Counted from the first letter of the stretch, positions 18,001-53,700 are shown. The stretch: 64,000 nt of DNA from Penicillus capitatus (GCA_965649825.1 OZ287714.1:186001-250000); one strand, 5' to 3'. Numbers and translations: made by a program. The notes: generated by a model not told the origin, from the sequence alone.

Positions 18001-20031
18001 TCCCCTGCCTGCATCTGCAACGGATTCTGTCCCAGTCGTCCAAAACATTCCCGAAACCGATTTTAGAGACGTCGACTTCGATGCTATCTGCGAAGATTTT
18101 GGCAAGAACGTGTTGCCTGTGCTGCCAGAGGGGTTCACCAGGGAAGACTTCATCGAATGTGACTATCGTCCAGGCGTCATTCCCTTCGCAGAGGAGATGG
18201 GCCGACGGGTCACGAAAGAGATCGAACCGATCGACGTTGAGAAACTGGCAGACGAACTCCAAAGGCAGTACGACGCCCTGCTGACCAATTCGAATGCGAG
18301 AGAGCATCTGAAGGCGGCCGAGAAAGCCTGGATGCAGACCGAGGAGCGTCTGGGATCCGAAATCGGTCGCGTGGCCGAAGCCTTGGAGAGCTACCTTCCA
18401 CACAACGTCTTCAACCGAAAGAGAGCGGATGTGAAGGGACCGACGATTCACATTCCTGGATACATCAAGCATCTGGCGACACAAGGAAGCGAGAAGAAGA
18501 TCTTCGCGAACAAGAAGGGAGGTGGAAGGGCAGAGTACGCCGTCGCGCTCCTCCTGGACATCTCTGTCTCGATGAAGCACGGAATCAAACAAACGTGTGC
18601 TCTGGAAACACTCTTCCTGATGATTGGGGCACTCCAGCAGATGAACATCGACAACTTTTCCGTGGTTCTGTTCGCCGAACAGATTTATCCGATTAAACTG
18701 CCGGATATGGCGTGGGAAGATGCGTGCATCGCCATGCTCATGAAGATTGTAGAGCAGGCACATGAGCCTGCGACCATGGATGCCGATGCACTGCTCTTCT
18801 CCGAGGAGCTGTTGGAATCCAGCAACGTAAGAGGACCCAAGAAGATCTTTATCATGACGGACGGCTATGGAAGCTCTGGTGTGCGACTCGCCTCCGCTTT
18901 GTCCAAACTTGAAGTGTCAGGAATCGATGTTCTGGCGATGAGCGTTGGCCCCGAAGTCTCCTTTGTCAAGAACTGCTACAACAAATGGATCACAGCTGCC
19001 TTTCCTCATCTGTTGCCGAATGCCATCGAACGAATGGAGAATGCCACGCGGACGGCGGCTCATAAGCAGAATGCGAGCCTTGGGGAACCTATGGTCTGGC
19101 TGAACCTTCGCCTTCTCCCAGAAAGCACGAACGAATCCGTCCGAGACATTCTCGAGAAGCAAGAAGCAGTGTTCTCCGACTTGGCACCTATGCGTGAAGA
19201 GAGAGAAGCACGATTGATACGTGGCAACAGACCATCCAGGATGTCAGTGGACATTTGCTTCTGCATGGATTGCACTGGATCTATGGGCCCTTGGATGAAA
19301 GCCGCCGTTGACCAAATCAATGTAAGGCTCACATCTTGGCTGGCAGTCTTAATGTCTTTTGTCGGCAACGTTTAGGTGATTTGCAGTACCATCTCTGAAA
19401 AGATCCAGGAGAAGCATTCTCTCGTGGAATTGGTTTTTAATTTCGGCATGGTTGCCTACAGAGATTACGGAGATGGTGATCGGCACATATGCCCTTGTCC
19501 CTTTGCACAAGGGCCAGATAATGTGCGCCAATTTCTCTCGCAGCAGAAAGCAGGAGGAGGAGATGATCCGGCAGAGGACGTCCTTGGAGGTCTGAATGCT
19601 GCCGTAGAGTTGGAGGGATGGAGCAGCAAAGTGAGATTCTGCATTCTCATTGCCGATATCCCTGGACACGGAAAAGATCTGCACACGAGTGAAATCAAGG
19701 ACAGGTGACCATCGACACTGATCCCTGCTCCGTTTCCAAAAGTTCTGTGCATAGATTTCTAGATGGCGATCCCCGCGGACTCACTGCTGAGGATACAATG
19801 AAGAGAATGCGAGAGAACAAGATCCACTTGCTTTTCTGCAGGATCACGAAATACACTGATATGATGATTGAGAAATTCAAGGCATGCTATGATGAAGGGA
19901 AATACTGTTTGGAGTCTAGGGATTTGGTGCCGCAAGAGGGGGCCTCTTCAACATCCAAAGTCGTCACAGATCAGTTCGGAAAGATCATTGGTGACATGTG
20001 CTCGAATGTCATTGTCGTCAACTTTCTTTAG
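1..20031 (+). CDS. Giant midasin-like AAA+ ATPase with ASH/Ig array and three C-terminal VWA domains (5'-truncated; about 6,640 aa in window)
   Basis: Frame is open from base 2 (L-I-K-V-V-R), so the start lies outside the window. AAA motifs: PVLLYGETSFKT (~374), LLLEGPPGIGKT...WILLDEIN (~2150-2375), VLLQGPTCSRKT...FILFDNIN (~3190-3750), matching midasin D4/D5/D6. MIDAS motifs: DNSGS (17438), DISVS (18557, preceded by a midasin-like W..E...L.....P segment), DCTGS (19268). Introns 19322-19375 (GTAAGG..TTTAG) and 19705-19754 join three track ORFs, ending at stop 20031. Confidence 0.9.
781..1032 (+). repeat. 126-bp (42-aa) tandem duplication inside the giant ORF, acidic/Gly-Ser rich
   Basis: ggaggattcgccggccgccgag starts at 781 and again at 907; peptides EDSPAAEYQGSGDGSSSGTEWGGSDEE.. 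and EDSPAAEDQGSGDGSSSGTEWGEANDE.. Confidence 0.95.
19322..19375 (+). other. Phase-0 spliceosomal intron (54 nt) in the third VWA domain of giant gene 1
   Basis: AAT|GTAAGG...TTTAG|GTG; removal joins AAVDQIN to VICSTISEKI; an equivalent intron is present in the paralog. Confidence 0.9.
19705..19754 (+). other. Phase-2 spliceosomal intron (50 nt) in giant gene 1
   Basis: AG|GTGACC...CATAG|A restores KDRFLDGDP; the paralog has DDR|FPDGDP with an intron at the same point. Confidence 0.9.
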
Positions 20032-23280: not shown

Positions 23281-26200
23281 GAAATCATGCTAACATTCTT
23301 TCTGTATAAATATTGACTGATTCTTTCCGGCTTATCGATCACTTGATAGATTATGCAAGCGCGACTCTGGGAAATAATGACCATTTTTTCTCAAAAAATG
23401 TTGTGTTTTTATGATTACTCCAGGACATCAAGTGATCAGGGCTCTCCGGTGAGCGTCTTCGCTGTTTCCTCCGTTGTGGCACCGCCCATGAGAAGAAGGT
23501 CGTCGGCATAAGCTTGTAGGTGCACGCCTGGATCCTTCGGCATTTGCTAGACTTCGTTTATTCCCAAAATGAGCAACAGTAGTTGTTATGGAAGAAGAGA
23601 AGAGGAAGGATATAGGAAGTGAAGTCAAATCAAGCCGCCAGCAGAGCGTCGTATGACGTCAGCATGACGTTAGACTCGCGTCATGCAGGGTGGCATAAAA
23701 ATTGGGGGTTTTCTTGTATCAGACTCAGCCTTTTTAAACACACGTTTACGTTCTCTTTCTCTCGCACCAAAATCCGCCGTATCAAGAGACTCAACGGCGA
23801 GCCCTGTGAACCCCCCTTTGCTTCCGTGTCAACGCATAGTGAGTATCTTCCAATCTTAAGTCGTGCGGATCATTCTTGTCGGGCATATGAGATAGATGCC
23901 TGTCTGATTTTGGCTATCTGGGATAGGCAATTGGAAAAATAAGAACGCTTTCAATCAGGGTACTGGTGAATTGTACAACGACGGCATTTTGAATTCTCCC
24001 TTTAAGATTTCTCAACTTTGTTTGTTTTCTTCGATTATGTTCGCTTGTCTTCCGGCGCCAGTACAACAATTCTTTGCGGAAAGAAGCGCGTCAGTTGGTC
24101 AGGTATAATAGAGCATTAAGTGTGCTCATCGTCTCTAGTAGATATGTTCTGCTAATTTTGTCGAACGTGGCATTCAAGTCAAGAGCCAATCCATAAGCCA
24201 CTTCCCCTGCTTGTGTGCGGTCTTCGATCTAGTCGGTGACTGGGACGAGGGCTTCAAACGTTCCCCTGGCAGGACGGAAGTCCAATTGGCATGAGTTAAG
24301 AACCTCTTTGCTTCCCGCCGAAATTTATGGCGATTGACAACCGGCGTTTTAACACAGTTGGCGAAAGAATCGAGCAGGCTGATCGATCTCAAGTTGAGAC
24401 GGAGTTTCCGGGGTTAAAAATAACTGTTTGATGGCTATTGATCGAGACACTTTATCCTTCGGTTGATCATAACAAAGATTCTAACTAGAAGTTAGTTAGC
24501 GAAACTCTGGTTTAACGCAAAGGAAAAAGACCCACACTATGCAACGTATTGTGACAACAATATTAAGTGCAACGAATGTAATCTAAGCTCTTGTAAACGC
24601 TGCTTGTAATTTGGGCACTTGCCAGACAAAAAAATATATTGCAGAACTTCACATTCCTAAATTGCATGGCCGAAGGATGTCAAGAGTAGATTACAGACGT
24701 TGCATGGAAAACGATCTTGAACGTCAAGGAAAGGATGATTGCGACTAGTAGATAACGGATATCCGTCCGCCTTAGTTGCGTCGAAAGAGTAAATGTCTCA
24801 TTGCCTTGCTGCCTGGAAATGTGCCTTCGTTTTATAGATTTAGAGCTTCGTTGGGAGCATTTTACTTATGAGGAAACTTACAATATGCCACACCACAACA
24901 ATTGGACACATCCAGACCAAAAGCTGCGCGAAAGGGACACCCGAACTCTACAGTCTGTGCAATTTCTTTTCAGAAAAAAGCCATATTCGACGGGAAGTAA
25001 CGCCAATGACGAAGTTTACAAGTCATACATTTGTTTTGCGTATCTCGCTCTTAAGTACCTTTTTCAACTTAGAAGTTCGAAGATAACGTGGTGGCGAAAG
25101 AGAACGGCCACATATCCCTCCAAAAACCCAAACCGCAGTTGTGAAGCAAGTGTTTCTCTTTCAGGCAGTTCGGAAACAACCTTAAAAGACTTGGTGATGT
25201 GTTAAACCGCGAAAAGTGAAACGATTCTTCAGCAAAAATAACATTTCTTTTGCACGGAAACCAACCAAATGCGCGTTTAAGTAACATTTTTTGAGCCGGG
25301 AGATGAAGCTGTAGTCTCTAGGGGAAATACTATATAAGAAACAATGACTGAGTTAAATAAACTGATAACATTGACCTTGGCCCACTAGACCTTCTCCTGA
25401 TTCGTCTGAAATAGTTATTGTGCGGATGGGCTTAATCAATCTATCTGCGAAAAAGTAGGTAAGTCTATCTGCGATCGAAAAGTATCGCCAAAGCGACGGG
25501 ATGTCTGATCGGGATGCAAAACAAAAAACACTAACGATGATGATGTGACAAAAAAGTCCATACATTGTCATGGATGACGGGAGACTTATAAGGGATCAGC
25601 AGGGAGATAGAGTCTATTACAGAGCAAGGACAGAGCACTTGCTATACTCTGTAGGCACAAGACAAGTTGAGAAAAAAACAGGCATGCAGCAAACTTCGGT
25701 AAAACCGTCATAAACACCGCTTTTACCAGGAAAACCTCATTTCGAAGTTGAAGACACGTTTGATAGCAACAAACAAAAGCAGACATGAATGTAGCGAGTG
25801 CGGTGTAGTCGAACTCGACGCTGCTGCAATGGAGAAGAGACATTGCAAGTCAAAGATCATTGATGCCTGGATGACGAAGACGTGTCCAACAGGTCAGGCA
25901 AGATAGATATCCCATCTATGCATAAGTAGTACATAAGGAAGGATATATGATGAAGCTTCTTAGCTTGTGATTTCGGAGCATGTTTAGATAAACCTGAACA
26001 TTGGCAAGAAGAGACAAAACAAATGGGTCCTTGACAAGCTGCCTTATCGTCTTCCATTCGTTTCAGAGTGTTGCGAGGTTGTTGACTCTCACATTTTCGA
26101 GGGATTGATCCCGATTGCGACTCCCACTGACTTAGGTTTGAATATGTACGAATCATAATTTAGCCGACCGAAAAGAAAGAGTAACAGAGTGACGGATTTA

Positions 26201-27072
26201 GATTGGTCGTGAATGAATGCACGATAATCTATACAACAGTTTCTGCCAGCAGAGAAATGGTCCATAAAACCACGATTCGAGAAAACGATTTAAGATGGAA
26301 ATAAGTACTGAGAAGACTAGAAGACCGGACAGGTTAATCGGTGATACAGACGAAGTAAGAGAGTTATGGAGCAGTCATGTGCATGGGCTAAGTGGGATAG
26401 GGCGACATTTAGAGGATATGCCGGGACGCGCACCGAGAAGCATCTCCATAGAATGACAGTAAGGTCAGTTGTGTATGGTGGAAGAAGACATTGTTATACA
26501 GAACCGGCTTTCCGAATATTCGGCTATGCGTAGACATTCACAAGACAGTGGTGTTACTGATGCAGTGGAACAAAGGCACGATCACTCGAATAACGTTCGG
26601 ACTCGCGGAAGAGCACTTCATATGTCGCATGGGTGTTTGGTTACTTTACCATGATCCCTGTCCACGAATAAACGTCGCCGGAAACACTTGTCGTATTTTC
26701 GCGGCAATCCCCATATGGGCGTCATGCGACTCAAAAAAGGAAGAATCTCTGCAAACGTCAAACAGGCGGGGTGTTATGATGTGACGACTGTCATAACGAG
26801 AGAAGTATCGTGATGCTTCGTAGAGTCATGCAGCAACTGGATGACGTGACCCATGGTGAAAACAGCCAGATGACTGAAACACCATACGAAAGTCAAACCA
26901 TCGAATTCATCACACTACATGGCAAGATGGATGTGTTTCTTTACAGAATACATCTTTGCTGAGAGCATTGAACCAATGTATGTTTCAAAAGGTTACAAGA
27001 ACATGCAGGAAAGGACAGTTATTCAAAAAACACCGCGGCTGATTTTTAAAGCAAACACCTTGCTTATCGTGT

Positions 27073-28494
27073 CTAGACCTTCATGTATACTCTCTGGTCT
27101 GGAGATGCGGTCCACGTCTTTTCACTGTCTGTGAAAGTGGTGATCATCTCCAGACTGACCTCGGGTTTGTCACGGGCAGCCAGGTGTCCGCACTGTTCAA
27201 TCTTCAGAAACGTCAGCAGATCATAAGTCTGAACCTCACCGGCCTGTTCGCCGTTCACCTTCCAGATTTCTTTGGCTGCCTGTTTCCATTCTGCAGCCGA
27301 TGTCCATTTCATGGCTTCGATCCAATCTCGAACACCTATATAATTGCAAATGAGATCCTGGTCTCCCGCATAGATCAATATCGGCAATCCTTTGTCCAGG
27401 AGTCGGGCCACTGAAGGCGTCATGTCTGTTTCTTTGTCCCAGCGAAAGGAATCATAAACTGACGTGTTGCAATGCATGTATTTTTTGTCTTCTGGAATTT
27501 GAAATCGCTTTTTCATTTGGGGCAGATTCATAAATCTTTCCAGTTTCTTCATATCATGACAGTCATCATCATCTGAGCAAGTGCGTCTGACATCGTACAC
27601 ATCGATATGGGGTTTTGCGTCCACTACTGGAGAGTACAATCCTTTTGAGCACAAATTAAAGGCATCCCCCGCGTAACACGATTTCATTTCAGCGAAATCT
27701 TTAAGTGCACTACAAAGAGCAAGGATAAGATTGCACATCTGCCAATGCTCCAACAGATTATTCTTGGTTTCTTCGTCAATCAGTTTCATCTCGTACCCAT
27801 ACACAGGGTACGAACGGTACTGCAATGAAGGATTTGTCCATGGATTACCAATAGCCATCGCCTTCAGAGGGATATGCATCTCGTCTCCCTTCTCATTGGC
27901 ATCTAAGATGCGATTTGCAATTGGTGGAAGATAGTGGCCAGCATACGATTCTCCGGCAAGGAAAAGCGGCTTCTGCTTCTCATCCCGATGTTCTTCGTAG
28001 AAGGCATAGAAGAACTGGAGAATGTGTTCGGCTACCTGCTCTTCTGTCGTCACTTTGTCGTCTTCGGAACCGTAACTGAATCCCACATCCAGGGGATGGT
28101 CCACAAAGATGATGTTGTATGCCGTATCCCAGCCGTGAGGATTCCAACAGAGAGTCAGATCGTCCAGGATCCGGTATGGACCGTTCTCCAGGAAGAGACC
28201 AATGAGCGAGGAGCATCCAGGTCCGCCATTGGTCCAGAAGAGGAGCGGCGCATCAGGGTCATCGTGTCTGTTTTTGATGTACATGTAGAACATGTGACCA
28301 CCGTCTGTTCCGTCGATAGTGAAGTAGCCTCCGCTGTGGGCATCTGGTTTGAGAAACTTAAAAGAATCTTCATTGACCGCCGTCGTCGACATCAGCGGCG
28401 CCATCTCGAGGTCCCACTCGACAATGCGCCCGCCACCAAGACATAAAGTCAATAGGGATAGACAGCAAAGACGCCAGAAAAGTTTCGTGGACAT
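27073..28494 (-). CDS. Serine carboxypeptidase, peptidase family S10, secreted; intronless
   Basis: Signal peptide, WTNGGPGCSS, GESYAGHY (catalytic Ser), GDQDLICN (Asp), CGHLA (His). Confidence 0.95.
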   Translation of the reverse strand: MSTKLFWRLCCLSLLTLCLGGGRIVEWDLEMAPLMSTTAVNEDSFKFLKPDAHSGGYFTIDGTDGGHMFYMYIKNRHDDPDAPLLFWTNGGPGCSSLIGLFLENGPYRILDDLTLCWNPHGWDTAYNIIFVDHPLDVGFSYGSEDDKVTTEEQVAEHILQFFYAFYEEHRDEKQKPLFLAGESYAGHYLPPIANRILDANEKGDEMHIPLKAMAIGNPWTNPSLQYRSYPVYGYEMKLIDEETKNNLLEHWQMCNLILALCSALKDFAEMKSCYAGDAFNLCSKGLYSPVVDAKPHIDVYDVRRTCSDDDDCHDMKKLERFMNLPQMKKRFQIPEDKKYMHCNTSVYDSFRWDKETDMTPSVARLLDKGLPILIYAGDQDLICNYIGVRDWIEAMKWTSAAEWKQAAKEIWKVNGEQAGEVQTYDLLTFLKIEQCGHLAARDKPEVSLEMITTFTDSEKTWTASPDQRVYMKV

Positions 28495-28668: not shown

Positions 28669-29861
28669 ATGTGGACAGGAGTCGCGGGTACGCAGCTTGA
28701 AAATGGATCACCCTTGTGGCTTAAGAAGCGCTGCGGCACGATAAACAGTGCCTTGCCAATAGAACGCCATTGCCGATCGGTCGCAATTGCTGTCCCAAGA
28801 GCGACGTCACGACCAGAGACAGAGCTCGTTGTGGACGTCGAAAACGTATCTCCACGGACACTGTTTGAGACAGGAACCATGGATTTGACGACGACTGGAG
28901 CAACGACTTCTTTTTCGAGAGAACCACTCATCTCTGAGAAGCTCGTCGTGTTCATCCGCCATGGATTTAGTACCTGGAATGAACAGCGACGAATTCAGGC
29001 AAGAAAAGCCAACAGTCGATGATAACTCAGTGACTGTCGCAGGGAGCTTCGGAAGAGTCACTCTTGACGCCGTTTGGCGAAGAACAGGCACTTCGATGCA
29101 AGCAGGCCCTTTCTGGGCTGCATTTTGACAGGTAGATGGTTATGGATGTTTCATGCTGTCTGAGTGAGATCGTCTTTGATTAGCTGTTTCGCGAGTCCGA
29201 TACGAAGAGCACTGAGAACAGCAGAGCTGGTTTGGGAAGATCGAGATGGTCCACTTGTTTTGATGGACGGCTTACGAGAAGCCGATCTTGGAATCCTACA
29301 AGGATTGAAGAATGGTATGGCGTCCAGCGCAGATAGCAGACCGAATGTTCTGTGTTGTTTAGAAGTGGCAGCGGTAGAATATGCAGAACTCTACAGGTCT
29401 TATTTCCTGTTCATATCTTGACCACCAACTGCGACATACTTACAGAGCGTGGAGAGATCAACCAGAGCATTTTTGCGTAGATGGGCGTTATCCCGTACAT
29501 GAGGTGTTTGAGCAGGCACAGACGGCCTGGAAAGGTACATAACAACCCATCAATGGGGAGCAGATAATCAATTCTTGTACTGGCAGATATCCTAGCGAGT
29601 CCTGGAGTTGGTCATCTAGTCGTGACGCACAAATCGATTCTCCGAGCCATGCTGTGCACAGCATTGAGATTGCCCCCGTCCAGTTTTCGCTGTGTTGATG
29701 TCAGTAACGGAGGAATCTGCACATTTCGGTCAGCAGAGTGGCACAAGTAGTTCTCAACTTTAAGGAGATGCGTGTATTCTAGGATTAACAAACGAGGAGA
29801 GCCGATGATGACGGGACTTAATCTCACATCTCATCTGCATGTAGCTGACGTGTATTACTAA
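28669..29861 (+). CDS. Histidine phosphatase (PGAM family), 2-carboxy-D-arabinitol-1-phosphatase-like, with N-terminal transit-like peptide; multi-exon
   Basis: VFIRHGFSTWNEQRRIQ|GASEESLLT, SPIRRALRTAE, LREADLG..QGL, DGRYPVHE, VVTHKS, SNGGI; resembles plant CA1P phosphatase from memory; the first intron is GC-AG. Confidence 0.85.
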
Positions 29862-30272: not shown

Positions 30273-33200
30273 ATGGGAACTCGTCGCCCTCCTCGTTTAG
30301 GTAACAACAAACCGATTTTAACTTACACGCCCTCAAACGGCACGAGACGCACGCGAAACTTTCTAAGCAGTTTCTCAACAAGAGCCGCTTACTTTAAAGA
30401 CCCTCGTCGGTTGTCCGCTGAATCATTTTCTTGGTGCTTTAGGTCTGCTGGTCCTATTAATTGCCGCTTTCTCGATTCATGAAGCCACTTCCCGCTCTCT
30501 CTCACAAAAAGAGAATGGGAGTCCGCCTCCAGGAGGGTTTCTAGAAGACGAAGTTCCACTGACTGTAGTCAGCACGACACCCGAAAAACTACGGACGGGT
30601 GGAAAAATAGCCGTAACCGGACGTGAATCGCTCACTGTACGCCTTCTTCTCCTCGTCGGCGACATGAGCATCTAACGCGTTCGACTTCCTAGGTTGTTCT
30701 AAGTCGTCCAGTTCTTCCAATTGGGCAACTGGTCGACGAAAAAACGTTTAACGAGAAGGTATGCGCGCACTACCACACATACAAGCCGCCAATGACTGCT
30801 AACGTATCTTCTGTTACTCTAGAGACCGTTCTCCCTCTCTCCGGAGATCAGTGGAAACTATAGATGGTTGACGACATATATTGTGGAATTTGAACCTGCT
30901 GAAGACTGGGCGTCTGACTTGGAAGTTGACTTTGAGTGGAATTCCGATCTCGTTACCTACGATGGTAAGTCATGGCCTGTCACGCTCATGTGAGTGAGAT
31001 GTGTTCTGTGAAGGTGTACCCTTCACTGTTCGCGGAAATGCTGCATCTCGGCTCACAACACCTGCGCTTAACTTATCCGCTGTGGCCGTGACATCCAGGA
31101 CCGCAAACAATCTCACGGATAACTTCTGGGATGCATTTGTGGGCACCAGTTTCGATATATTGCCAGAAATGCCGGTCGATGGTGTGGCTGGTTATCCCTT
31201 TTGTCCAGGATGTGACATGTTTGGCATGTAGCGTACATCCAACTCGTCGCGAGTTCGCCCATCAACTTGGACGTTCTTCAGACGTCACTTCTGGTAAAAG
31301 ATGAAAGACGAATCGTATCTGTATGATCACACGGTGGCGATTTAGGTTGTCGATCCACTTACAAATGGAAATCCTCCTGTGTCAGTGAGTGTTGCAGAAT
31401 GTGTTATTCCTGAAATTCCTTGCGCTGACGTAAGCTCTCATCGATTGGCATATATTGGCATGCATGTCTTGTCTGTTTTAGTGTCTTTCTGAAGAAGTCG
31501 ATGGGGAGCAAAGAGGCGGCGGAAGAAGCGAACCAGATCAGCCGGTTTATGGATCATACTATGGCGGAGAGGAAGAAGAGGAAGAAGAGGAAAAAGTCGT
31601 TGAACAGCCAAAAGAGAAAGAAATCGTGTTGACTGGAGCATCCAGCAGCTGCATCAATATTTCCTTCGCTCACGACCAAGAACAAGGCTTCACCCAAGGA
31701 CGCAGGTATTCTCTCGTCTTGCCGTCCGATACTCAGTACAGCAACGACGCCGGACCATTGACGAAAGACGTCTCGATCAATTTCGCTGGGCTGAGAGATT
31801 TCAGAGTGCCCTTTGTCGAAGATTCGAAATTCAATGTCAGCAGCTCGCGTCTATTCATGTGGATTCCGCATGGACTGGCCGATGGTCAAAATCTGACAGA
31901 TTTCCCAATGAAACTCGTCCGTGCAAAGACTGGACAAGACGTAAGAATATTCACGCAATACCTCGAACCTTCTTCATCACGGCACGCGATCTGCAGGTTG
32001 ATTTCTCTCTCGAGCTCGTTAGTAAATCGGTAATCCGCGTCAATGCAAACTTCAACCCGGGATCGACATACAGGTACGAGATCTGGCAATCAAAACGAAG
32101 ATGGCATTGACACCTTTTCTGTGGTTTCTAGGATCAGTGTCTTCGAATCGCCTTCGTTCAAAGATGGCTACGGCCTCAGTCTCAAGAGATCCAACATCAA
32201 CTTCTTGGCAGCACCCATTGAGCCTTTCTTTGGTGCCATGACCGTTCCAACAGATGTTAAGTAGGAACTCGATGTTACTGGTTACACCTTCTGATTCTTG
32301 TGCGATTAGGCTTGCTATCTTCGAAGAAGGACAAGATTGGGGAGAGAAGATCGTCGTTGTCTCCAAGGGCAGTCCTTTGTCAGACGACAGCGTTTGTAAG
32401 CGGGAAGGGTCGGCAATCTTCTCCTGGGACATCAGTGACCCAGAATCCGGCCTCCCTCTTCTCTCAACAGAACCGTTGGACACCTCTGTCACTGACATCC
32501 TTGGCGTTGCAGGTGCGACGACGCTATCCAGTTAAGCGGATGACTAACACCACATCTGTTTCTCCATTCAGCTGATCGTTTGGTCGATGAGCGCACAGAC
32601 ATTGCAGGAGACACGCAAGAAATGGACATCACAAAGCTTCTCAAGACATCCGGCCTCGTTGCTGGATCGTACTGCAGGTTTGAACAGATTCTCTGCGTGA
32701 TGTCTATCTAACATGGTTCGCCAGGAATGACATGCACTATCCACTTGTGGTTTGCGAGACAGAACTCCAAGTTGTCGTCTTGATCACGAGTGCCGTTACT
32801 TCCAAAGGACGGACAGCATTGGTGTGGGTGACAAACATGAAGAATTCTTCCCCCGTTGCCGACGCAACAGTTGCTCTCTATGAACCGACCGGCAAGGTAA
32901 GCAAGAGACATGTATTTGACGCCAGATGCGTATCACGGTGGTGATGGTACAGAACAAGTTTAAGGAAGTGAGTGACGGAGAAACTGACAAAGATGGCGCT
33001 GCTCTTTTGTCTATCGACGGTGGCAGCAGCGAACTGCATGCCGTTGTTACATCCGACGGAAAATCTGTTTACGTTCCACATGTCGAAGTGCAAAATGGAG
33101 TGGTGTCTGCCATCAGCGATTCTGTTATCCTTGATCGTCCTATTGCCCGCCCTGGTGAATGGCTACGTGTGAAAGGTCGAATACCCAACCTGTTATTGCT

Positions 33201-36200
33201 GACTTACGTATCGTATTCCTTTCCTTCTAGGTTATGTTATGCAACGAGATGGTGGCGACTATCTCCCAACTGACGTCAAGAATATCCGCGTGGTCGTTTC
33301 GCCTTCGATGGTGCGAAGCACAAAGGAATCCGACGTGATTGGTATTACAAGATTCAATAAGGACTTTGGAAGTTATACTCTGAGTTTGAGAATTCCGTTG
33401 AGTGTGATTGCTGTTCACCACACCATCAGAGTCGAAGCAGATCTTCCTGGCGGTGGCACTTACGTCGGAAAGCCAGAACCCTTCACTGTTCTCAACTCTC
33501 GCAGAGCTCCTGCCGTGTTGACAGTCAATGCTCCCGTCTGGGCGCTGCCAAACAAAAAAGTCAAAGTCAAATCTGGGGTGACGAGCTTCGCTGGTGCACC
33601 CATTGAAGATGCACGACTCCTCTTCGTTTGGAGCATTCAGGGTAAGAGATCGCATTCCTTGTGTCGTATGCGATGATCGCATTTGTGCAGATGATGCGAG
33701 AGATGACGATGATGAAGCACTGACAGGACGTGTTGTTTCATACACGGATGGTTCTGGAGAAGCGTCGGCGACGATCGATTTAGCCAAATTTGCCAACTCG
33801 CCCTCGGCAGGAACGATTCTCCAGATCACCGCACACTACACAGGACCTTCAGGAGAACGTGTTGAAAGCAGCACGACTGTCAGACTTGAACCAGCTGATG
33901 TGGATATCGTGCTTCAGAAAACAGTGGATACAGATCTGCCACAGCAGGAATTCGGCATCAGAGCTGCCGTCTATGATCTTTCAGGAAAGCGTCTGACGAC
34001 CCGAGAAACAGTCACCTATGCATTGAAGCAGATCCCAGAGTTCAGATCGAACGGACGGCCAACATTGAAGCCGACCACATCCAGTTCAGAAGCTCCAGGG
34101 AAAACTATTGAGAAATGTGAACAGTCCTACAGAAGCACAGAGTTCTGCAGATTCAAACTTCCAAAGATGGGTCAGTATGTCGTCGAAGCATGTGTCAAAG
34201 TCGGTAAATCCAAAGCCTGCAAACGTTCGTACATGGGAAAAACAAAGAATGCGTGGGAAACAACACCACTCGAACAACATCTGCCATTTGGTGTGACTCC
34301 CATCACAACAGGACCCTACAAAGTCGGCGATGAAGCCTCGTTCTTGATCGAGAATCCGTTTGGTGATGTGACTGTCTTGATGGCTTGGGGATCGAGAGAT
34401 GAAGTCAAAACAAAGGTGGTGACGGTAAAGACAGGTTCGACGACGCTGGAGTTTAAGGTGGACGATGTCTGCACGGCCAACTGCGCCTTGTCTATTTCTG
34501 CAGCCATTCCCCGACAAAAGAAAGGTCTTGCCAGTGAAATTTCCGTCCCTGTTAGTGCTGTCTTTGACCCATCCATGCCACACAACGAGCACTACACGAC
34601 TGTGATCGAGACAAAGAGAGAGAAAGCTACTCTGGCGATGAAGGTGTCTGTTCCTGGTATCAAGATGGATAATGGCGTTCCTCTGATGGAGCCAGGTCTC
34701 AATGCCTCAGTCAGAGTGACATTCGACAGAAAGGGGCCTGTTGAAATCACTGCATTTGCAATCGATACAAAAATACTGGATCTGCTGCCCTCTCCTCTTA
34801 AGGATGTGTCTGATGATTTCGTTTCAGACCTATCCGACTACTTCCGATACAAAAGTACTTCTGAAAACATGGTGGCACCTGGAGCCATCGATGCCATTAC
34901 TAAAGCAAATGAAGCACGCAAAAAACTGGACCCATGGTTCAGAATGATTACTACTTTGCAGCCTTCTGAAGAAACCGCAGACATTCAACTGACAGATGAT
35001 CAGTACCTCGAACAATATGTACAGTACCTGACTGTCGTGCCCCGCTCGCCTGCAGAAAAGGCAGCGGCAGCAGCTGCACCTGTGAGCATAACTAACATTG
35101 AAGAAGATGAGCCGACAGAGACACCAGCCCCATTCAGCAGAGTTGCACTGCTAACTAGGCCAACTTATGCAACACCAATACTGTTCGAGAGCTACACCGC
35201 TTCTGGCGGTGTTTGGTTAGTGAACTTCGAAGGACCCAAAGAGGGTGGAGAGTTCATGATCCGCGCATACGCATCCTCAGGCACTGGACTCTTCGGTAGC
35301 GACGAGGTCCGAGTGAGAGTGAAGAGAAACATTGCAGTGACCCATGACTTCCCCGCCTTCACCCGTCTGGGAGATGTCTTTGAGGCGGCCATCAAGATCA
35401 GCACTCTAAAGGTGGCAGAGAAACCCATTGCTTTGACCATTGAACCTTCCGAGAACTTGAAGATGGAGGGAGCAGAAGAGCAGAACGTCCATATGGGAAA
35501 ATCGCTCGAGAAAGAAATTCGTGTCACGTTCACGGCGAAGGGCGTCGGTGAGTCGACCATCAAGATCGTGGCAGACGACGGTACAGGAAACGATGCAAAA
35601 ACGACCATTCGTTTGACCATCTACGGTCCACAGCCACCTGTTGTTCTCGGATCAGCCTTCCCAGTCTCGGGAGACGCCGCTGAGGAGCCAAGCAGTGAAA
35701 TGATTGTTCCAAATGCACTCGAAGGAAGTGGATCCCTCGTCGTTGCCGCCGGAGAAGGGCATCTCCCTGGACTCTTGCTCTTGGCTGATCAGATCTATTC
35801 TCAAGACTCCTTCACCTGTCCGATCTCAGCTGACTTTGTGGTTGCCACGCTTGCCATCCCGGCCATCGTCGATTTCTATTATCCATGGAGCCCAGATCCA
35901 AACTTGTTGCCTGAGTTCTATGTAGAGCTGGTCAATGGCATACTCGCAACGTACCAGACTGCCTTGACAACGATCTACACAGACTCGACATCCGTGAGTC
36001 TTGGGTTAGAAGTCGAAGTCCCTTGTCAAGCAGGTGGCATCTCAAAACCTGGTGTCTCTCTGGAACAAAACGCAAAGGGCATTATCATCATCGACAATGT
36101 GGAGAAACGTCTAAAGGAGCACAACTTGGAGGTGCGTCCTCTCATCCATCGCCAAACAATGCATGATGACTTGTCTTGTGTCATTCCTTAGGAGATCTAC

Positions 36201-37677
36201 AAAAACACAGCAGCTGTGTTTACAGCAAGGAGAACGTGGATGTCTGTGCTCGAAGATGGTCTTGTGGATGAAGCGACAGCTGCCAGAGAGCAGAAGGAGG
36301 TCATCAGCACATCGATTGTCGCCGTTGCACGTTATGCATTGGGACCCGATTGGGCTCCTCCAAAGGGAACACCTGAAGACATCGTGAAAGATCTGTCAAT
36401 GGATCGTTTGAAGAAAGAATTCAATTCGATGACTGTGGAAAGTCAGGCTTACTACGCTCTGGCTCTTCTGTCCGCCAAGAAGGTGGACCGGGCCGAAGTG
36501 AGAAAGGTTTTCGGGTCCTGGGAAAACAAGATTACGACAGCTGGAAACAGAGCCTATGTGACATCTGGCAAAGATTCCGTCACTGCTGATAGCAGTCTGG
36601 CAAACAGCCTTGTCTTCTTGGCCATGGTTCGTGGCGAGGCCAGCGACAATCTACTCAAGAGAATGGCATACTATGTGACAGCTCCGATCTCAGATCCTTA
36701 TGGCTTCAATGACTACTCCATTTACGCAAAGATGGTGGCAATGATTGGTCTGGCAGATTATGATGCCAGTCTCAAGCCTAAGAAAAACAACCTCAGACTC
36801 GAACTGCGATCTGGCACTATTATTTTGTTCTCCGCCTCTTTCACTCCAGGACGTCATCCAGTGTCTGCTCAATCGACGGCATGGGAAGATCTCGGCAACA
36901 ATCCTGGACCCATCCAGGTTTTCCCTCAAGGGGATGGCGAGATTAACGTGGCCATTGCGATGAAGTATGTTCCCAGTGACGCATTAGATAACCCAATCTA
37001 TAAGGGTATCTACGTCAACCGGGTGATCCAGCTAGACAGCGCTGGTCCTATGAGTGAAGGAGTTTCCAAAGTTCCGGTGGGAACTGTCGTCAACATTAAG
37101 ATCCATTTCATGACACCTACGGTCCTGGAACATACAACTGTTCAAGTATCTCTTCCGGCAGGGTTAGAACCTGTGCAATTAGGGGGAGAGGGCGCAGAGT
37201 TCTGCCCGATTCCATTTTTCGACCTCTTCAGTGATAAATTTTACCCAGACTGCCCAGAGCAGGTTAGCCTCTCTCTGCCTCCACACACAGTGCCGAGTCC
37301 TAATGCTTCTGTGTTTGTCTGTTCTGCAGATTACATTGGCCGATCAGGTTCAGTTTGTGTATAAGAGTGTGAGCGCAGGCGCACACACTGTGACCTTGAA
37401 AGCCGTTGCCGCGATCTCTGGAAGCTTTGGTGTGCCCCCTGCTCGTGTTTTTGTGACCGATACTCCGTCGATCATGGGTATGAGTAGCACTGCACGATTG
37501 GACATCTGCAAGGCGTCGGAAAAGAAGTGCGCGATAGAAACAGTCGACACGGAATTCATTGCAACCGAGTGCAAGAACAACTGCAATGGAAATGGGGTCT
37601 GCGATCTCAGCAACGGAAAATGCTCATGTTTCTATGGCTTCGGGGGAGACGACTGTCAAAAAGCTGGAGCTGCTTAG
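30273..37677 (+). CDS. Bacterial-type alpha-2-macroglobulin-like protein, secreted, with C-terminal EGF domain; about 17 introns, roughly 2,100 aa
   Basis: Spliced N-terminus MGTRRPPRLGLLVLLIAAFSI (signal peptide); GNYRWLTTYIVEFEP (Big_5-like); LVWVTNMKNSSPVADATVALY; ILDRPIARPGEWLRVKG (MG2); FAGAPIEDA; AIDTKILDL; FMIRAYASSGTGLFGS...FPAFTRLGD; VGTVVNI...SLPAGLEP and GSFGVPPARV (MG10); CKNNCNGNGVCDLSNGKCSCFYGFGGDDC (EGF). Confidence 0.85.
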
Positions 37678-37995: not shown

Positions 37996-39468
37996 ATGCG
38001 TCGGGCACTCGCGTTACTCTTTACGCTGAAATGTCTCTCGACTGTTCTGGCCTCCCATGCTGTCGTCACAGTGGAGACACCTGCGATAGACTTTGGTGTG
38101 GATAATTTTACACAGGAGCTAAGTGACGTCCGTTATGCGGGGAGCACCTGGCTCATCGAGTATTATGCGCACTGGTGTCCACACTGTCAGCATTTCAAAC
38201 CCATTTACGAAAAGATTGGCGCGTTCTTTAATAAAGAGCCCCGTCCGGAGCCTCTTCTCTGGGTGGCCCGCGTCGATTGTGCAGAAAAGGGGAACATGGC
38301 TCTCTGTGACAAATTCCTCGTTAAGTCATTTCCAACAATCTTGCTGGGTGGCGTTTCTGACTTTTTGGAACACAACGAAAAGAATCTAATGCCCATTCCA
38401 TCCAAACAACCACAAGCCATGATCGACTCTATCAATGCAAAGCTGGGAACACACTATGCGTTCGACGAGAAGAAGAAAACATCTGCACATCCAGTTGAAA
38501 AATGGAAGGATGCAGAGACGAAAGGATTTGGTGTGGACGATGTGGAGCGGGCCACTGTTGAACTCTTTGAGTATCTCTTTAGCTCGACACTCATTCTGCA
38601 GTCCTCAGAGGTGCGTCAGGATTTCCTGCAATGGATTACCTTGCTGTCAGAAGCGCATCCTTCTCCTCGCTGTCGACAAGGCTTTCGCTATGTGAAGAAA
38701 CAGATCGGCGTGCTGTGGCCGGAGACTTCGGTGAAGCCGATTCCGCATATGTCTCGTCTACATGTGTGCACTGTCCAATACGAGAAGAAGGAATGGCAGT
38801 CCTGTGCTGCTTCCGTTCCAGAAAAGCGTGGCTTCACCTGTGGACTGTGGCAGCTGCTCCATGCACTGTCTGTTGGTATTGAGGACCAGCAGACCGATCT
38901 TTGGATGCAGGGTGTCCGTGCATTTGCCCGGCACTTCTTCGGCTGCGCAGAATGTGCCAAACACTTTCTCTTGACCCTTGACAGAGAAGAGGCGAGAAGA
39001 GTGCAGTCTCGAAGAGAGCTGATCATGTGGCTGTGGTCCATACACAACCTCGTTAATAAGAGACTCGGCAGAGAAGAAAGAGAGAATGGAATGGGAGATC
39101 CAGAGTTCCCCAAAGTCCAGTGGCCTCCTGTCCGGCTCTGTCCTCAGTGTCATAGTACCTCCCATAGTGAAGACCAGGTCGACTGGAATGAGTATGAGGT
39201 TTTGGAATTCCTCGATCGCTTCTATGCTTCAGTGGATGAAGAGGAGCGGCCCATGAGTGTCAGTCGCAAGGAATTGATAGATGGCGAGCGAGAGTTCACT
39301 TCTGTAGATGTCTTTTCCAAAGAGGATGCCACTGCCATGGAACTCCATGCAAGGACGGGTGTCGATATCACCTGGTATGTCTTGATCGTGATGATCATCC
39401 TTGTTGTTGTTTTGGTGAAAAGAAGCAGAAGACGTAAACTTGTTCCAAATGCAAAGGATATTCTGTGA
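37996..39468 (+). CDS. QSOX: Quiescin sulfhydryl oxidase (thioredoxin + ERV/ALR); intronless
   Basis: Signal peptide, WCPHC, FTCGLWQLLH, FFGCAECAKHF, WLWSIHNLVNKRL, WPPVRLCPQC, C-terminal TM helix followed by KRSRRRK. Confidence 0.95.
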   Translation: MRRALALLFTLKCLSTVLASHAVVTVETPAIDFGVDNFTQELSDVRYAGSTWLIEYYAHWCPHCQHFKPIYEKIGAFFNKEPRPEPLLWVARVDCAEKGNMALCDKFLVKSFPTILLGGVSDFLEHNEKNLMPIPSKQPQAMIDSINAKLGTHYAFDEKKKTSAHPVEKWKDAETKGFGVDDVERATVELFEYLFSSTLILQSSEVRQDFLQWITLLSEAHPSPRCRQGFRYVKKQIGVLWPETSVKPIPHMSRLHVCTVQYEKKEWQSCAASVPEKRGFTCGLWQLLHALSVGIEDQQTDLWMQGVRAFARHFFGCAECAKHFLLTLDREEARRVQSRRELIMWLWSIHNLVNKRLGREERENGMGDPEFPKVQWPPVRLCPQCHSTSHSEDQVDWNEYEVLEFLDRFYASVDEEERPMSVSRKELIDGEREFTSVDVFSKEDATAMELHARTGVDITWYVLIVMIILVVVLVKRSRRRKLVPNAKDIL

Positions 39469-44679: not shown

Positions 44680-46564
44680 CTAGTCTTGATATCTCATGGA
44701 GCTCTTCTCGAATCCAATAGTGGGAAAGTGCTTAGCATACAGCGTCACATCATTACCCAGTGCTTCGATCTCCGGAGATTTGTTCTGCTCTAGGTATCGA
44801 TTGAAGTCTTTTACTTTGGAGCCAATCTCTTTTTCGGCCTTGGCCTTAATGTCTTTGGCAATGACGACCCCGCGATCGACGAATTCTGCGACTTTGTCGA
44901 AGTCGCGTTCCGTGAATCCGCGGGTCGTCAGTGCTGGCGTCCCCATGCGCAATCCTCCAGGGATCATGGCACTGACGTCTCCAGGGACAGTGTTCTTGTT
45001 GCATGCAATGTGTGCCATTTCTAAGACGCGTTCCACCCGTGCGCCGTCGACGCCTTTCGGTCTGAGATCCAGCAACAGCAGATGGTTTTCTGTTCCCCCG
45101 GACACAAGGGTGTAGCCTCTCGACATCAATCCATTCGCCAACGCTTGGCAGTTTTTCAGAACCTGAATCTGGTATTCCTTGAACTCTGGGCTCAGGGCTT
45201 GTTTGAGGGCGCAGGCCAATCCAGAAATCGTGTGATTGTGGGGTCCTCCTTGGAGGCCAGGAAAGACGGCGAAGTTGATTTTGCTATCCAGATCGTACAT
45301 GATCGGCGTCCCTTTCTTATCGACGCCTTTCTGGCCTTTCCGATAGAAAATCATCGCGCCGCGAGGGCCCCTCAATGATTTATGTGTCGTGGTGGTCACC
45401 ACGTCGCAATGCTCAAAAGGACCAGGAATGACATCTGCTGCAACCAAGCCACTGATGTGTGCCATGTCTCCTGCAGGGACAGCATTGAGAATGAGCTGCC
45501 GGTAAGATAGAATACAGCATTACCCAATAGAATAGCCTTCGCTTTGTCAGCAATCTGACGCATTCTTGGGTAATCATAGTGTCGAGAATAGGCAGAAAAG
45601 CCAGCAATAATGATCTTCGGTCGGAAAAGCATCGCCATCTCCTCAAGTTTGTCATAGTCAATGAGGCCAGTCTCTTCGTTCAGGCGATAAGCCATTGTCT
45701 AAAGGACAGAAAGATATGCGGACGGGATCATGAGAAGTACGATCGGCATTTCGATGTACCTCGAAGTAGATGGAGACAGCTGAGATCTTTTTTGTGTCTG
45801 TTTGGTATCCATGACTCAAGTGACCTCCATGTGGCAGATCCAAAGCCATGATTCGATCGTGCGGCTTGAGCAGTGCTGTGTAGACTTGAAAATTGGATGG
45901 TGATCCAGAGAGGGACTGCACATTGACACCCCATTTTTCGGGATCTAACCTATAGGCCTCTAGTGCCCGTTTCTGACACAGACTCTCTGCCATATCGATA
46001 AACTCATTGCCACCATAATATCTCGCTCCTGGATATCCCTCAGAATACTTGTTTGTCATGACAGATCCAACAGCCTCCAACACGGATGCAGATGTAAAGT
46101 TTTCAGACGGAATCAATTCCAGTCCCTGGGAATACAGTGATCTTCTCACTCAGCCTTGGGCAGATGAAGAAGAGGGCAGCACCTTGTACTGGCGGTTTTT
46201 CTCTTTTTCGATGATATCGAACAATTCAGGATCCATCTCGGACAGCGGAGCATTCATCTTCGACACCCATTTCTACAGTTGTCATTGAAGGGGATGAAAA
46301 ACGATGTCCGTCTGATGGCACTATACCGGTAGTTCTTCTGCCTCTGGTGACGCCGCCGGCTGCGAACACACATAATTGGCGAAGAAAGCACGTAACGGAC
46401 AAGGAGCTTACCACTGCCGCAAAAGACTGCGTGGCCAAAAGCTGAACAACGAACAAGAAATGATGAGCACATCGGCTTCTCGGATTCGAGGGAGCAGATC
46501 ATACCGGTTGAAGTCGGGTCACAAGGCTTCTGACTCCAGATACCGTCCGCGTCAATCCATACAT
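44680..46564 (-). CDS. SHMT: Serine hydroxymethyltransferase, mitochondrial type; multi-exon
   Basis: [65 protein letters not shown]; Arg/Ser/Thr-rich presequence [20 protein letters not shown]. Confidence 0.97.
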
Positions 46565-50791: not shown

Positions 50792-53700
50792 TCAGAAAAA
50801 TGAAACGAGAATGACATCTGTAATCATGTCTGAGACGATTGCACCGAATCGTGCAACCACTTCCTTGCTCAGTCCATCAACGTCTTCAATTCCGCCTTCA
50901 TCCTCATCAAACAGAGGGCGACAATGCAATTCTCGACGATCATTGTCGTCATAGAGTTCTCTAAACCTCTCAAACATCATATCCGTTGACGCGTGGATTT
51001 TGCATCCCATGAAGAAGATGTTCCTGTCAATGATCTTTCGTATGATAGCATCTGTCTTCAGCCCAGTAGGATCTCCATCTGGAAACCTATTATACGGTGA
51101 ACCGTCTAGTCGATATCTTTGCAGAATAGAATGCGAAGATACCTGTCGTCAAATCCTCCATGGAGTTCGACGCCGTGACCAGGTGAATCGGCAATAAGGA
51201 TGAGAAACCGTGCTTTGCTGCTCCACTTCAGCTCTGTAGCTGCAAGCAATCCGCCCAACACATCTTCGGCGCCGTCATTTCCTCCAAATGCTTCTTGTTC
51301 CTTCAAAAACTCTCTTAGCTTGTCTGTTCCACTCTCAAATTCACAGCGACAGATTTGGTATTCTTTTCCATCTCCATAGTCTCTGTAAGCCACCATTCCA
51401 AAACGAATGTCCACCGTCATATCAGGATTCTGATTTGTGATCTCCCTCTGGATGTGCTCAGATATTTTCTAAACAAAACAACTTCGATGCATCTGCAGGC
51501 CACGAATGAAACAGTGTTCTTCACCTGTACTTGATCAGTGGCTGCCTCAATCAGATCGTCCATAGACGATGTACAATCCATGACGAAGCAGATGTCAACG
51601 GAGAAGGTCGAAGGACCACTTCCGTCTTTATCTTTCAAGAATTCTTTCTTTGCTTTCAGCATCTTCTGGAGTTCAGGAAAGAGACGCTCTGGATTATCTA
51701 GAAGCTCTTCCATTGCGGTCTGATTGCCCGTCAGCATTGCCACTGCCGCTCCTTCATCCTTTGCTGCTGCTGCATTGCCTTCGTGCAGTCTTGAAATCTC
51801 GACCTTGTCCATCACACTTTCCAATGCGTCCGGCACGAGCTGAGGCAATGCGGCTGTGATCCATTTGTTGTAGCACTTCTTAACAAAGGAAGGTTCGACT
51901 CCCACATCGATGGCAAGAACATCAATCCCTGACTCTTCCAGTTTCTGCAGAGAAGCTGCAAGTCTGACACCCGTACTACCGTATCCATCTGTGAGGACAA
52001 TGATCTTCTTTGCCCCTCGACAGTCGCTTCTGTCAAGCAACCGTTCAGCCAAGAGCAATGCATCAGCATCTTTCGTCACGGGCTCATTTCTCTGTTTCAT
52101 AAGACTGATGAAAGCAGCGATGGACACGTCTTCCCACATGGCGTCTGCCAACTTCACTGGAAAAAAGTTATCACCAAAGAGAAGAAGGGTAAAGTTCTCG
52201 AGATTCATCTGCTTCAGAGCGCCAATCAATAAGAGAACTGTCTCGAGGACACATGTTTGTTTTCTGCCATGCGTCATTGAAACAGATATATCCAACACGA
52301 TGGCCACCGAATACTCGGATTTGCCACCTCCTTTTCGGCTGGCAAAGATCTTCTTCTCGGCTCCCTTCGTCGCCAAGTGCTTGATGAATCCTGGCAGATG
52401 GATCGACGGTCCTTTGATATCAGGTCTCTTTCTTGCAGAGACATTCTGTGGAAGGAAATCCTCCAATGCCTCTGTCATTCTCTCGATGTCGACGCTCAGT
52501 CTATCTTCTGCTCGCATCCAGGCAGCCGCTGCTGTCTTCGAACGTGTGATCTGTTCGGGACTTGCCAATAGACGGGTGAATGCTTCATGCCAACTGTCAA
52601 TGAACTTCTCAGCCAATTCTTCTTTGCATTCAGGGCTCTTGGTGACCATCTGAGTCATCTGGATGCTATAAGGCACGGCGTCTTGCTGATAATCGCATTC
52701 ATAGAAATCCTCTCGTCGGAGACCTGGTTTGGAAATCTGCTGCTCTCCCAGATTCTCAAGCACAGCATCATAATTCGTGTCCAATCTCAGCTCAGAAAAC
52801 CAATCATCTGTTCCAATTTGTGACAAATCAGACGATTTGGTATCATGCTTTTTTGTAGGTTTCCAGTACTCATTCAGCACAGCCTTGATCATCTCGCTGA
52901 TGCATGCTGGAAGAGTAACAAAATCCTGTTCAACATCCAGGACTTGAAAATTCAGTGCAACGCGATCCCATAAACCTTGAACCATGTCCAACATCTCTCT
53001 GTGTGCTTCGTTCGTCAGATTCAGCACAACAAGTGCCATAGATCTCCTCGCGCATATAACACTATAGTCTTGTCGTTTTCTCTCTTGAGTGATGCCATCC
53101 GTGATCAAGAACATGACTCTGTGGCATCGAGGGTCTTCGTCTTCTTCTGATGAACTGGTAGGCCAAACGGTCTCTGCAGCATTTGCAATGGCAGTTGCTA
53201 TATATGTGCCTTGATCATATGAGAAGGACTCAATCACTTTCTGTCCGATGACGTCAGTAAAATGATCTGTGACCATTTTCAGCATCTGTTGAGAGTTTCG
53301 ATCGCCAAAGCGGGTCACTGCAAATGGCTGTTCCATTCTTCTCAGAATCTCCATGGTCAATGCCAACGCCACATTCATCTGAATACTCTTGCGCTGCATA
53401 GATCCAGAGTTGTCAATCAAGATACACCATTCAATTCGATGCATTTCCACAGTCGTCTGATAGAATTGTTCAAAACACGGTTGACATCGCTGCATGATGG
53501 AAATCAACATGCGAATGAAGTCTTCATTCTCCAGCAGCTTTTCATAAGTAGACTTACGATTGGTATTTAGATCAAGTTTGATCGGCTCGTCCAGCGTCTT
53601 TCCGCCCGTCCTTGCATTAATCTCCTTGGCATCTTTGAAAAGCTGCACCATGTCCTCATCGTCCAATGTCTTGTCCAGTAGCATTTTCTGAGCAGAATAG

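Follow-up and report, generated by a model that had tools for sequence, protein, structure and literature searches.

The plus-strand gene at 30273-37677 in a 64,000-nucleotide stretch of the alga Penicillus capitatus (GCA_965649825.1 OZ287714.1:186001-250000; hereafter the window, with positions counted from its first letter) encodes a protein of 2151 amino acids (aa). This protein is very probably a bacterial-type alpha-2-macroglobulin (A2M) that lacks the thioester and belongs to a clade of eukaryotic proteins. The explanation that we favour as a whole, with a probability of roughly 60%, is that of a secretory A2M of bacterial architecture, encoded by a resident nuclear gene of a green alga and belonging to an ancient eukaryotic clade, that would act as a bait-triggered, non-covalent protease trap. 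An initial annotation of the same DNA had read the interval as one plus-strand gene with about 17 introns, a signal peptide and an EGF tail, encoding a bacterial-type A2M domesticated in an alga. Coordinates, strand and both terminal features are borne out below, the intron count is exactly 17, and the loss of the thioester, on which that annotation did not remark, is added.

Bacterial architecture and fold

A HMMER scan of 1.84 billion representative sequences with aa 900-2090 as the query found 620 relatives, 89 of them below 1e-30 and many of them 2000-2400 aa long and collinear. An alignment of the window model with 20 relatives, in which the N-terminus, the body and the C-terminal EGF are all conserved, was the source of a family profile. 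In the PDB this profile matches E. coli YfhM/ECAM (E value 3.8e-14, four collinear segments) and the Salmonella A2M (2.3e-9) only, the sole animal thioester-containing protein (TEP) at E <= 10 being C3 with an E value of 2.3. Conversely, a profile built from 38 bacterial A2Ms of about 2000 aa, themselves found by profile search, matches the window protein with an E value of 3.4e-66 in three collinear pieces over aa 71-2095 (profile positions 124-203, 512-1418 and 1600-1954 against aa 71-156, 559-1525 and 1749-2095). One bacterial protein, P0284, carries Big_5 (136-234), bMG3, MG2, A2M_BRD, A2M and bMG10 at coordinates near-identical to those of the algal protein. Searches of either protein half against the PDB with phmmer returned EGF matches or nothing, and an NCBIfam scan gave no match.

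For aa 900-2090, AlphaFold2 with 56 homologs produced a model with a predicted local distance difference test score (pLDDT) of 79.6 and a predicted template modelling score (pTM) of 0.62. From its N-terminal end, the model comprises beta sandwiches, a helix-containing stretch of low confidence, beta domains, an all-helical domain of about 320 residues and a final beta domain. Foldseek places the Salmonella A2M (4u48, 1.5e-39) and native ECAM (5a42, 3.5e-39) first among PDB entries, over about 1270 columns; CD109, C5, A2ML1 and A2M come next, all over about 1250-1350 columns. The N-terminal half was modelled on aa 1-1150 of the ortholog P0282 (pLDDT 71.7); apart from its signal sequence and a pair of disordered inserts, it is all beta. 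Here again ECAM (5a42, 2.1e-23) and the Salmonella A2M (4u48, 1.2e-22) lead, over about 830-840 columns, whereas animal TEPs match more weakly (about 1e-16) over about 590 columns. Thus, the extra N-terminal domains appear to be of the bacterial kind. Over their whole length the models match A2M/TEP structures, with a chain of macroglobulin (MG) domains, a bait-region domain (BRD) and, ahead of the last MG domain, a helical thioester domain (TED). The placement with bacterial A2Ms rather than animal TEPs, made in the initial annotation, is therefore upheld alike by the bMG10 domain described below and by the profile, PDB and Foldseek matches.

In a Pfam scan of the full model, bMG10 (PF17973; aa 1951-2076, 37005-37449, all features being on the plus strand) reaches 44.1 bits (cut-off 26.2) over profile positions 1-124 of 131; it is cut by intron 17 and contains LPAGLE and GSFGVPPA. 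An A2M-type domain is thus detected, one of two points on which the initial annotation had let its interpretation stand or fall. The other families that it had named fared less evenly, with A2M_BRD and A2M sub-threshold and MG2 and Big_5 unreported. Nevertheless, bMG3, A2M_BRD, A2M/MG7 and EGF are collinear in the canonical order, though each is sub-threshold. The first beta domain, Big_5-like, spans aa 71-156 (30553-30930) and corresponds to the first piece of the bacterial profile. A bMG3-like segment (aa 626-675; 20.5 bits, below the cut-off of 34.9) and an MG2-like segment (aa ~713-800) lie together at 32810-33445, and this is the best-scoring part of the family profile against YfhM. The former contains LVWVTN..PVADATV and the latter begins with LDRPIARPGE, so that these motifs and those of bMG10 are real and stand in the order first described. 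The A2M_BRD-like bait-region domain (aa 1072-1230, 34308-34784) covers Pfam positions 7-140 of 140, and the A2M (MG7) domain (aa 1373-1436, 35211-35402) aligns to YfhM 957-1025. The alpha-helical TED (aa ~1557-1875, 35763-36779), cut by intron 16, comprises residues 658-975 of the AlphaFold segment, with pLDDT mostly above 85. Across 21 family members, Pfam reports bMG10 in all 21, A2M in 19, A2M_BRD in 12, bMG3 and EGF in 10 each, MG2 in 9 and Big_5 in 3.

The thioester is lost. Cys1575 occupies the column of the bacterial thioester cysteine (YP[YF]xCxEQ) in an alignment with bacterial relatives, but the sequence in the TED is a degenerate C-P-I-S (35817-35828). Close orthologs have CPIS or CPV[EDH] in this column, and Volvox lacks even the cysteine. 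Whereas CxEQ is kept in 41 of the aligned bacterial relatives, it occurs in the TED of no eukaryotic family member seen; the sole C-x-E-Q of the window protein is a CPEQ at aa 2033, inside bMG10. With the thioester absent, the mechanism to be expected shifts from covalent to non-covalent.

Sliding-window identity against three orthologs reveals two hypervariable segments. The first, aa 261-320 (31394-31625), is an acidic low-complexity insert with an EEEEEEEE run, 22-34% identical to the orthologs and with gaps; its counterpart in the ortholog model, aa 242-308, is disordered (pLDDT below 50). The second, aa ~1311-1360 (35025-35174; VVPRSPAEKAAAAAAPVSITNIEEDEPTETPAPFSRVALL), is bait-like. No part of the protein is less conserved (14% identity to the orthologs), and the two most conserved parts lie on either side of it. 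The stretch is disordered, with a pLDDT below 50 at aa 1325-1360 of the model, and lies between the BRD and MG7, which is where A2M baits sit.

Both ends of the protein are consistent with export. The predicted signal peptide region (aa 1-48, 30273-30486), recognised by a hydropathy scan and ortholog comparison, spans intron 1 and has a 17-residue hydrophobic core, FLGALGLLVLLIAAFSI (aa 29-45, 30427-30477), with likely cleavage after HEATS and before R. Ortholog N-termini have short n-regions, equivalent hydrophobic cores and then A-x-[AS] followed by R, and the N-terminus is hydrophobic in 48 of 65 full-length family members. We therefore predict, from hydropathy and the ortholog pattern, a secretory N-terminus of eukaryotic type encoded across an intron. 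At the other end, the EGF module (aa 2117-2147, 37570-37662) scores just below the cut-offs of EGF_Teneurin and EGF_2; only four residues follow it, and the protein has neither a transmembrane nor a glycosylphosphatidylinositol-like tail. Of the 27 core-chlorophyte members, 24 have such an EGF tail, as against 4 of the 51 others.

In the PDB, the EGF tail comes closest in sequence to the EGF repeats found in tubular mastigoneme proteins of stramenopiles (9ufe, E 8e-5), and its pattern, C.NGNG.CD...G.C.C..G..G.DC, is common to teneurin-type EGFs. A stramenopile host, suggested by the mastigoneme likeness, was given up in view of the neighbouring serine hydroxymethyltransferase (SHMT) gene and the A2M tree, both of which point to green algae.

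Gene model, relatives and descent

One plus-strand gene fills the interval, from the start codon at 30273 to the stop codon at 37675-37677. Its coding sequence of 6456 nucleotides (nt) has a single, terminal stop. The 18 exons lie at 30273-30300, 30371-30636, 30693-30758, 30823-30964, 31014-31181, 31232-31293, 31346-31429, 31482-31940, 31997-32073, 32132-32260, 32310-32512, 32572-32677, 32725-32896, 32953-33175, 33231-33641, 33691-36131, 36192-37262 and 37330-37677. All 17 introns are GT-AG and 47-70 nt long (mean 56), and several contain a CTAAC-like branch site. In the raw sequence the gene appears as two very long open reading frames (ORFs), 33594-36191 and 36216-37364, with many short ORFs in shifting frames upstream; single ORF pieces alone gave weak Pfam matches only (A2M, A2M_BRD, bMG10, bMG3 and EGF).

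The model was built by comparison. The long 865-aa exon, used as the query of a word-indexed protein search, returned three proteins only, among them the orthologs P0002 (63% identity) and P0003 (53%). Three contigs (L001-L003) hold the entire orthologous locus, including an upstream His_Phos_1 gene. Stop-to-stop frames of these loci were mapped onto the window, giving 16 conserved blocks in alternating frames, and frame-preserving GT-AG pairs were then enumerated. Junctions 2-17 (16 of the 17) are gapless against P0282 and the EukProt proteins P0280 and P0281; the gene model of P0280 fuses the histidine phosphatase with the A2M-like gene. P0282 is a 2142-aa ORF that fills 6.5-6.7 kb RNA-like contigs from two RNA-type samples, and the short flanks around the ORF indicate that these contigs are assembled transcripts. 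The placement of exon 1 is our inference from a recurring pattern. Exon 2 has no in-frame ATG ahead of the hydrophobic core, and exon 1 (MGTRRPPRL with a GTAAC donor) would correspond in L002 to a nine-codon basic exon, MKRKPMHPL, ending in G before its GTAAG donor. In L001 (4431-8303) the last 1290 aa form one exon without window introns 16 and 17 (compare 33691-37677 in the window), whereas both introns are present in L002 and L003, so introns have been gained or lost within the group.

The eukaryotic clade comprises at least 75 full-length clusters at 50% identity. Its members include, in Ulvophyceae, two paralogs of Bryopsis sp. KO-2023 (GMH39924 and GMH44595) and a protein of Ostreobium (CAD7702674); in Chlorophyceae, proteins of Edaphochlamys, two species of Volvox, Gonium (KXZ55787), Chlamydomonas sp. 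UWO241, C. schloesseri and Dunaliella (KAF5837388); in Streptophyta, one of Mesostigma; and in Amoebozoa, those of Dictyostelium purpureum (XP_003294015, DICPUDRAFT_99830) and Clydonella. Judged by these sequences, at least two eukaryotic supergroups are represented in the family. Public records name its members hypothetical, 'EGF-like domain-containing' or, automatically, 'Bacterial alpha-2-macroglobulin MG10 domain-containing protein'; in the literature searched, on A2Ms of algae, amoebae and stramenopiles and on bMG10, we came across no account of this family.

A neighbour-joining tree was computed from 143 sequences of at least 1500 aa (1419 columns, Kimura distances, 100 bootstraps); 13 of its eukaryote-type sequences are named by organism and the rest were assigned by clustering. 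The split of 79 eukaryote-type from 64 bacterial sequences has 93% bootstrap support, a value to be read with the weakness of neighbour-joining on saturated distances and with the tree's unknown root in mind. Support is 100% for the window protein with P0282, for this pair with the two EukProt proteins, and for the resulting group with Bryopsis and Ostreobium; the core-chlorophyte clade has 97%. As the gene tree follows the algal classes with 97-100% support, vertical descent within green algae is indicated. The algal host proposed at the outset is supported both by this grouping, which points to a relationship with Bryopsidales, and by the SHMT fragment in the window, which is most similar to Viridiplantae sequences.

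Identity of the window protein is 52-57% to its nearest relatives and 20-36% to named eukaryotic orthologs. Eukaryote-bacteria distances are saturated (2.4-3.0) and show no closest bacterial group; a bacterial donor was sought by these distances, and the saturation leaves none nameable. Two short bacterial sequences, P0339 and P0349, sit close to where the eukaryotic clade begins.

The initial annotation had proposed an old horizontal transfer into the alga. The bacterial signatures keep a bacterial origin plausible. A transfer specific to the alga is unsupported, however, as one eukaryotic clade, separate from the bacterial A2Ms in the tree, extends across Chlorophyceae, Ulvophyceae, Mesostigma and Amoebozoa, and any transfer must then be ancient. 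This distribution, together with vertical descent among green algae, comes near to the broad eukaryotic inheritance that it had itself named as evidence against its proposal. A bacterial origin, if there was one, would plausibly be very old and not specific to the Penicillus lineage. That thioester-less A2Ms of bacterial architecture form an ancient eukaryotic family that reaches back to the root of both Archaeplastida and Amoebozoa, or close to it, is a larger claim that we consider doubtful. If true, eukaryotic A2M-type protease traps would be older than animals, and the family would serve free-living protists and algae outside the cell, as a defence against the proteases of bacteria or predators. 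The accepted picture, in which TEPs are an animal invention and bacterial A2Ms were acquired from animals, would then need revision.

Neighbouring genes

Directly upstream lies a multi-exon His_Phos_1 gene with an RHG motif (about 28669-29860, plus strand), and this adjacency is kept in L001-L003. A single-exon gene for a QSOX-type sulfhydryl oxidase (37996-39468, plus strand) begins 320 nt past the A2M stop codon; besides Thioredoxin and Erv1/Alr domains, its product has a signal peptide and, at the C-terminus, a transmembrane segment. A secretory disulfide-forming enzyme thus adjoins an A2M-like protein that has 26 cysteines and is predicted to be secreted. A secretory-pathway protease gene is also close by, namely a single-exon S10 serine carboxypeptidase (27073-28494, minus strand; Pfam E 3e-107) on the opposite strand about 1.8 kb upstream.

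Two giant uninterrupted ORFs flank the region, at 11-19375 (plus strand, 6454 aa) and 51417-63974 (minus strand, 4185 aa). Paralogous to each other, they share 30% identity over about 2700 aa and have HYDIN/ASH-like Ig domains and C-terminal VWA domains, with dynein-type AAA_5 ATPase modules in the plus-strand ORF. Both reach nearly to the window edges and may extend beyond them; they are intron-free, in contrast to the 17-intron gene. The 3' exon of the SHMT gene lies at 44680-45465 (minus strand), and a 97%-identical SHMT protein on ENA contigs of 271 kb and 4.1 Mb points to very close relatives or haplotypes in public assemblies. In the interval that separates the first giant ORF from the carboxypeptidase gene, GC content falls to 0.42-0.45 (24001-28000), compared with about 0.49-0.52 elsewhere. 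No rRNA or tRNA was found in the 64-kb window.

Proposed function and alternatives

Type I bacterial A2Ms (YfhM/ECAM and Salmonella Sa-A2M; 5a42, 4ziq, 4rtd and 4u48) match both halves of the algal protein best in structure, share its bMG10 and provide the only PDB sequence match of the family profile. However, the CLEQ thioester, lipoprotein anchor and pbpC neighbour of ECAM have no counterpart in the alga, and ECAM is about 500 aa shorter. Instead of a lipobox, the algal N-terminus carries the predicted signal sequence across an intron. The lack of pbpC, already pointed out in the initial annotation, holds in that no transglycosylase or transpeptidase domain occurs among the window ORFs scanned; an example of a Myxococcota A2M likewise has no pbpC beside it.

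When comparing the algal protein with Type II A2Ms (P. aeruginosa MagD, E. coli YfaS; MagD was compared by description), the shared features are a large, monomer-type A2M body in which MG domains of the bacterial type are combined with a bait region, the absence of CxEQ, and export from the cytoplasm, which for the algal protein is a prediction. An A2M body without thioester, the hallmark of Type II, is thus present in the alga. MagD differs in being about 1500 aa long, encoded in the six-gene mag operon and stabilised by MagB at the inner membrane (PMC5764988), whereas the algal gene is monocistronic and its 2151-aa product has a predicted eukaryotic signal peptide, an N-terminal extension that is Big_5-like, and an EGF tail. 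A Pfam scan of the window neighbours revealed nothing suggestive of MagA/B/C/E/F partners, although no search was aimed at Mag partner profiles.

A further comparison is offered by the Big_5 A2Ms of about 2000 aa from Myxococcota, Acidobacteriota/Blastocatellia and Chloroflexota (such as P0284 and P0291), which have the same length class, Pfam order and near-equal coordinates. Most of these keep CxEQ, and they have neither EGF nor introns and share 13-17% identity with the algal protein. The eukaryotic orthologs share the full-length architecture, the predicted signal peptide and the thioester loss; those of green algae also have the EGF tail.

Type I bacterial and animal A2Ms trap the protease after bait cleavage, and the thioester adds covalent help. 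For the algal protein we propose non-covalent trapping triggered at the bait, tentatively and at slightly under even odds. The protein would be exported to the wall or extracellular space, where a foreign or endogenous protease would cleave the exposed bait loop. The MG/TED body would then rearrange and grip the protease non-covalently, as in MagD, and the EGF module may tether the complex to wall or matrix partners. The model for these steps is MagD, which lacks CxEQ and in which the bait is cleaved and the protease held non-covalently (PMC5764988).

Several points weigh against the overall explanation. Within the window protein only bMG10 exceeds its Pfam cut-off, the other matches being sub-threshold. 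The pTM values of 0.62 and 0.44 make the relative placement of domains in the two models uncertain, and the N-terminal fold was predicted on an ortholog 57% identical to the window protein rather than on the window protein itself. The evidence for transcription comes only from the P0282 contigs of a relative, not from Penicillus. A clade-wide trapping function would extend by analogy from MagD, which acts as part of a Mag complex of several proteins, and the algal gene shows no sign of comparable partners. Lastly, loss of the thioester could instead mean that trapping itself has been lost.

This last point leads to the main alternative, in which the A2M scaffold was retained without trapping, the MG/TED body and EGF serving as building blocks of a structural, adhesive or wound-plug matrix protein. 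The thioester is gone in every eukaryotic member, it is the green-algal branch in particular that acquired the EGF tail (24 of 27 members), and the protein has two acidic low-complexity inserts. Moreover, the close relatives are siphonous algae, which form protein-rich wound plugs. Yet unicellular flagellates and amoebae have members of the family that lack the EGF tail, so a plug or wall role cannot have been ancestral. An exposed loop that is hypervariable, sits exactly where a bait belongs and has the most conserved regions on either side looks like a protease-facing bait, and MagD still traps a protease without a thioester. We consider a matrix role unlikely.

Membership of the CAGE complex family (Tetrahymena CAGE1, Dictyostelium AbpF) was considered seriously. 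CAGE proteins are cage-forming, about 2300 aa long and found in Gram-negative bacteria and microbial eukaryotes, with a patchy distribution over Volvox, some Chlamydomonas, Dictyostelium and Gram-negative bacteria (bioRxiv 10.1101/2025.09.22.677704). Their size is similar to that of the algal protein, their occurrence in green algae, Dictyostelium and bacteria is strikingly similar, and some of their beta domains resemble A2M MG domains (bioRxiv 10.1101/2025.09.22.677704). However, D. purpureum encodes its CAGE homolog (XP_003286438, DICPUDRAFT_77330) and its member of the present family (XP_003294015) in separate genes. In CAGE proteins the N-terminal 440 aa or so are alpha-helical, Pfam domains are absent, and eukaryotic members have no signal peptide (bioRxiv 10.1101/2025.09.22.677704), whereas the N-terminal 1150 aa modelled here are all beta and Pfam A2M domains and a predicted signal peptide are present. 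No CAGE entry is among the Foldseek matches of either model. We rejected this assignment, as very improbable, on these grounds.

A recent or lineage-specific transfer from bacteria, or bacterial contamination of the assembly, is effectively refuted. It would account for the bacterial Pfam signatures (bMG10, bMG3 and Big_5) and for the nearest non-eukaryotic relatives being the ~2000-aa A2Ms of Myxococcota, Blastocatellia and Chloroflexota. As the initial annotation had argued from the introns, though, contamination does not fit a gene with 17 spliceosomal introns, and its GC content (0.497), GC content at third codon positions (0.499) and codon usage are like those of neighbouring genes. The gene lies on a 6.93-Mb contig among eukaryotic genes, with His_Phos_1 synteny kept in three relatives. 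Its identity is 13-17% to bacterial proteins versus 26-57% to algal orthologs, and both the 93% eukaryotic clade and a green-algal subtree that matches taxonomy speak against recent transfer. An animal-type thioester protein acting as a covalent, complement-like opsonin is equally improbable, for although the fold also matches CD109, C5, A2ML1 and TEP1 (E 1e-37 to 1e-31), CxEQ is absent, the Pfam scan of the full model has no A2M_recep (PF07677), TED_complement (PF07678) or anaphylatoxin match, C3 is the best animal hit of the family profile at E 2.3 versus 3.8e-14 for YfhM, and the N-terminal half aligns over some 830 columns to bacterial A2Ms versus some 590 to animal TEPs.

A2Ms and TEPs are textbook molecules of animal innate immunity, and their bacterial versions are viewed as guards of the envelope. 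The A2M fold and its thioester-less subtype are known already. Previously undescribed is their combination in a eukaryotic family of green algae and Amoebozoa, with a predicted secretory N-terminus, a Big_5-to-bMG10 architecture and, in green algae, an EGF tail. The secretory, bacterial-style A2M proposed here would thus represent a third, unstudied branch, eukaryotic and thioester-less, with members in Volvox, Gonium, Dunaliella and D. purpureum. It raises the questions of how old A2M traps are, in which direction they moved between bacteria and eukaryotes, and whether a monomeric A2M without a thioester or Mag-type partners can capture proteases. For algal biology, the protein is a candidate extracellular defence or wall-associated factor.

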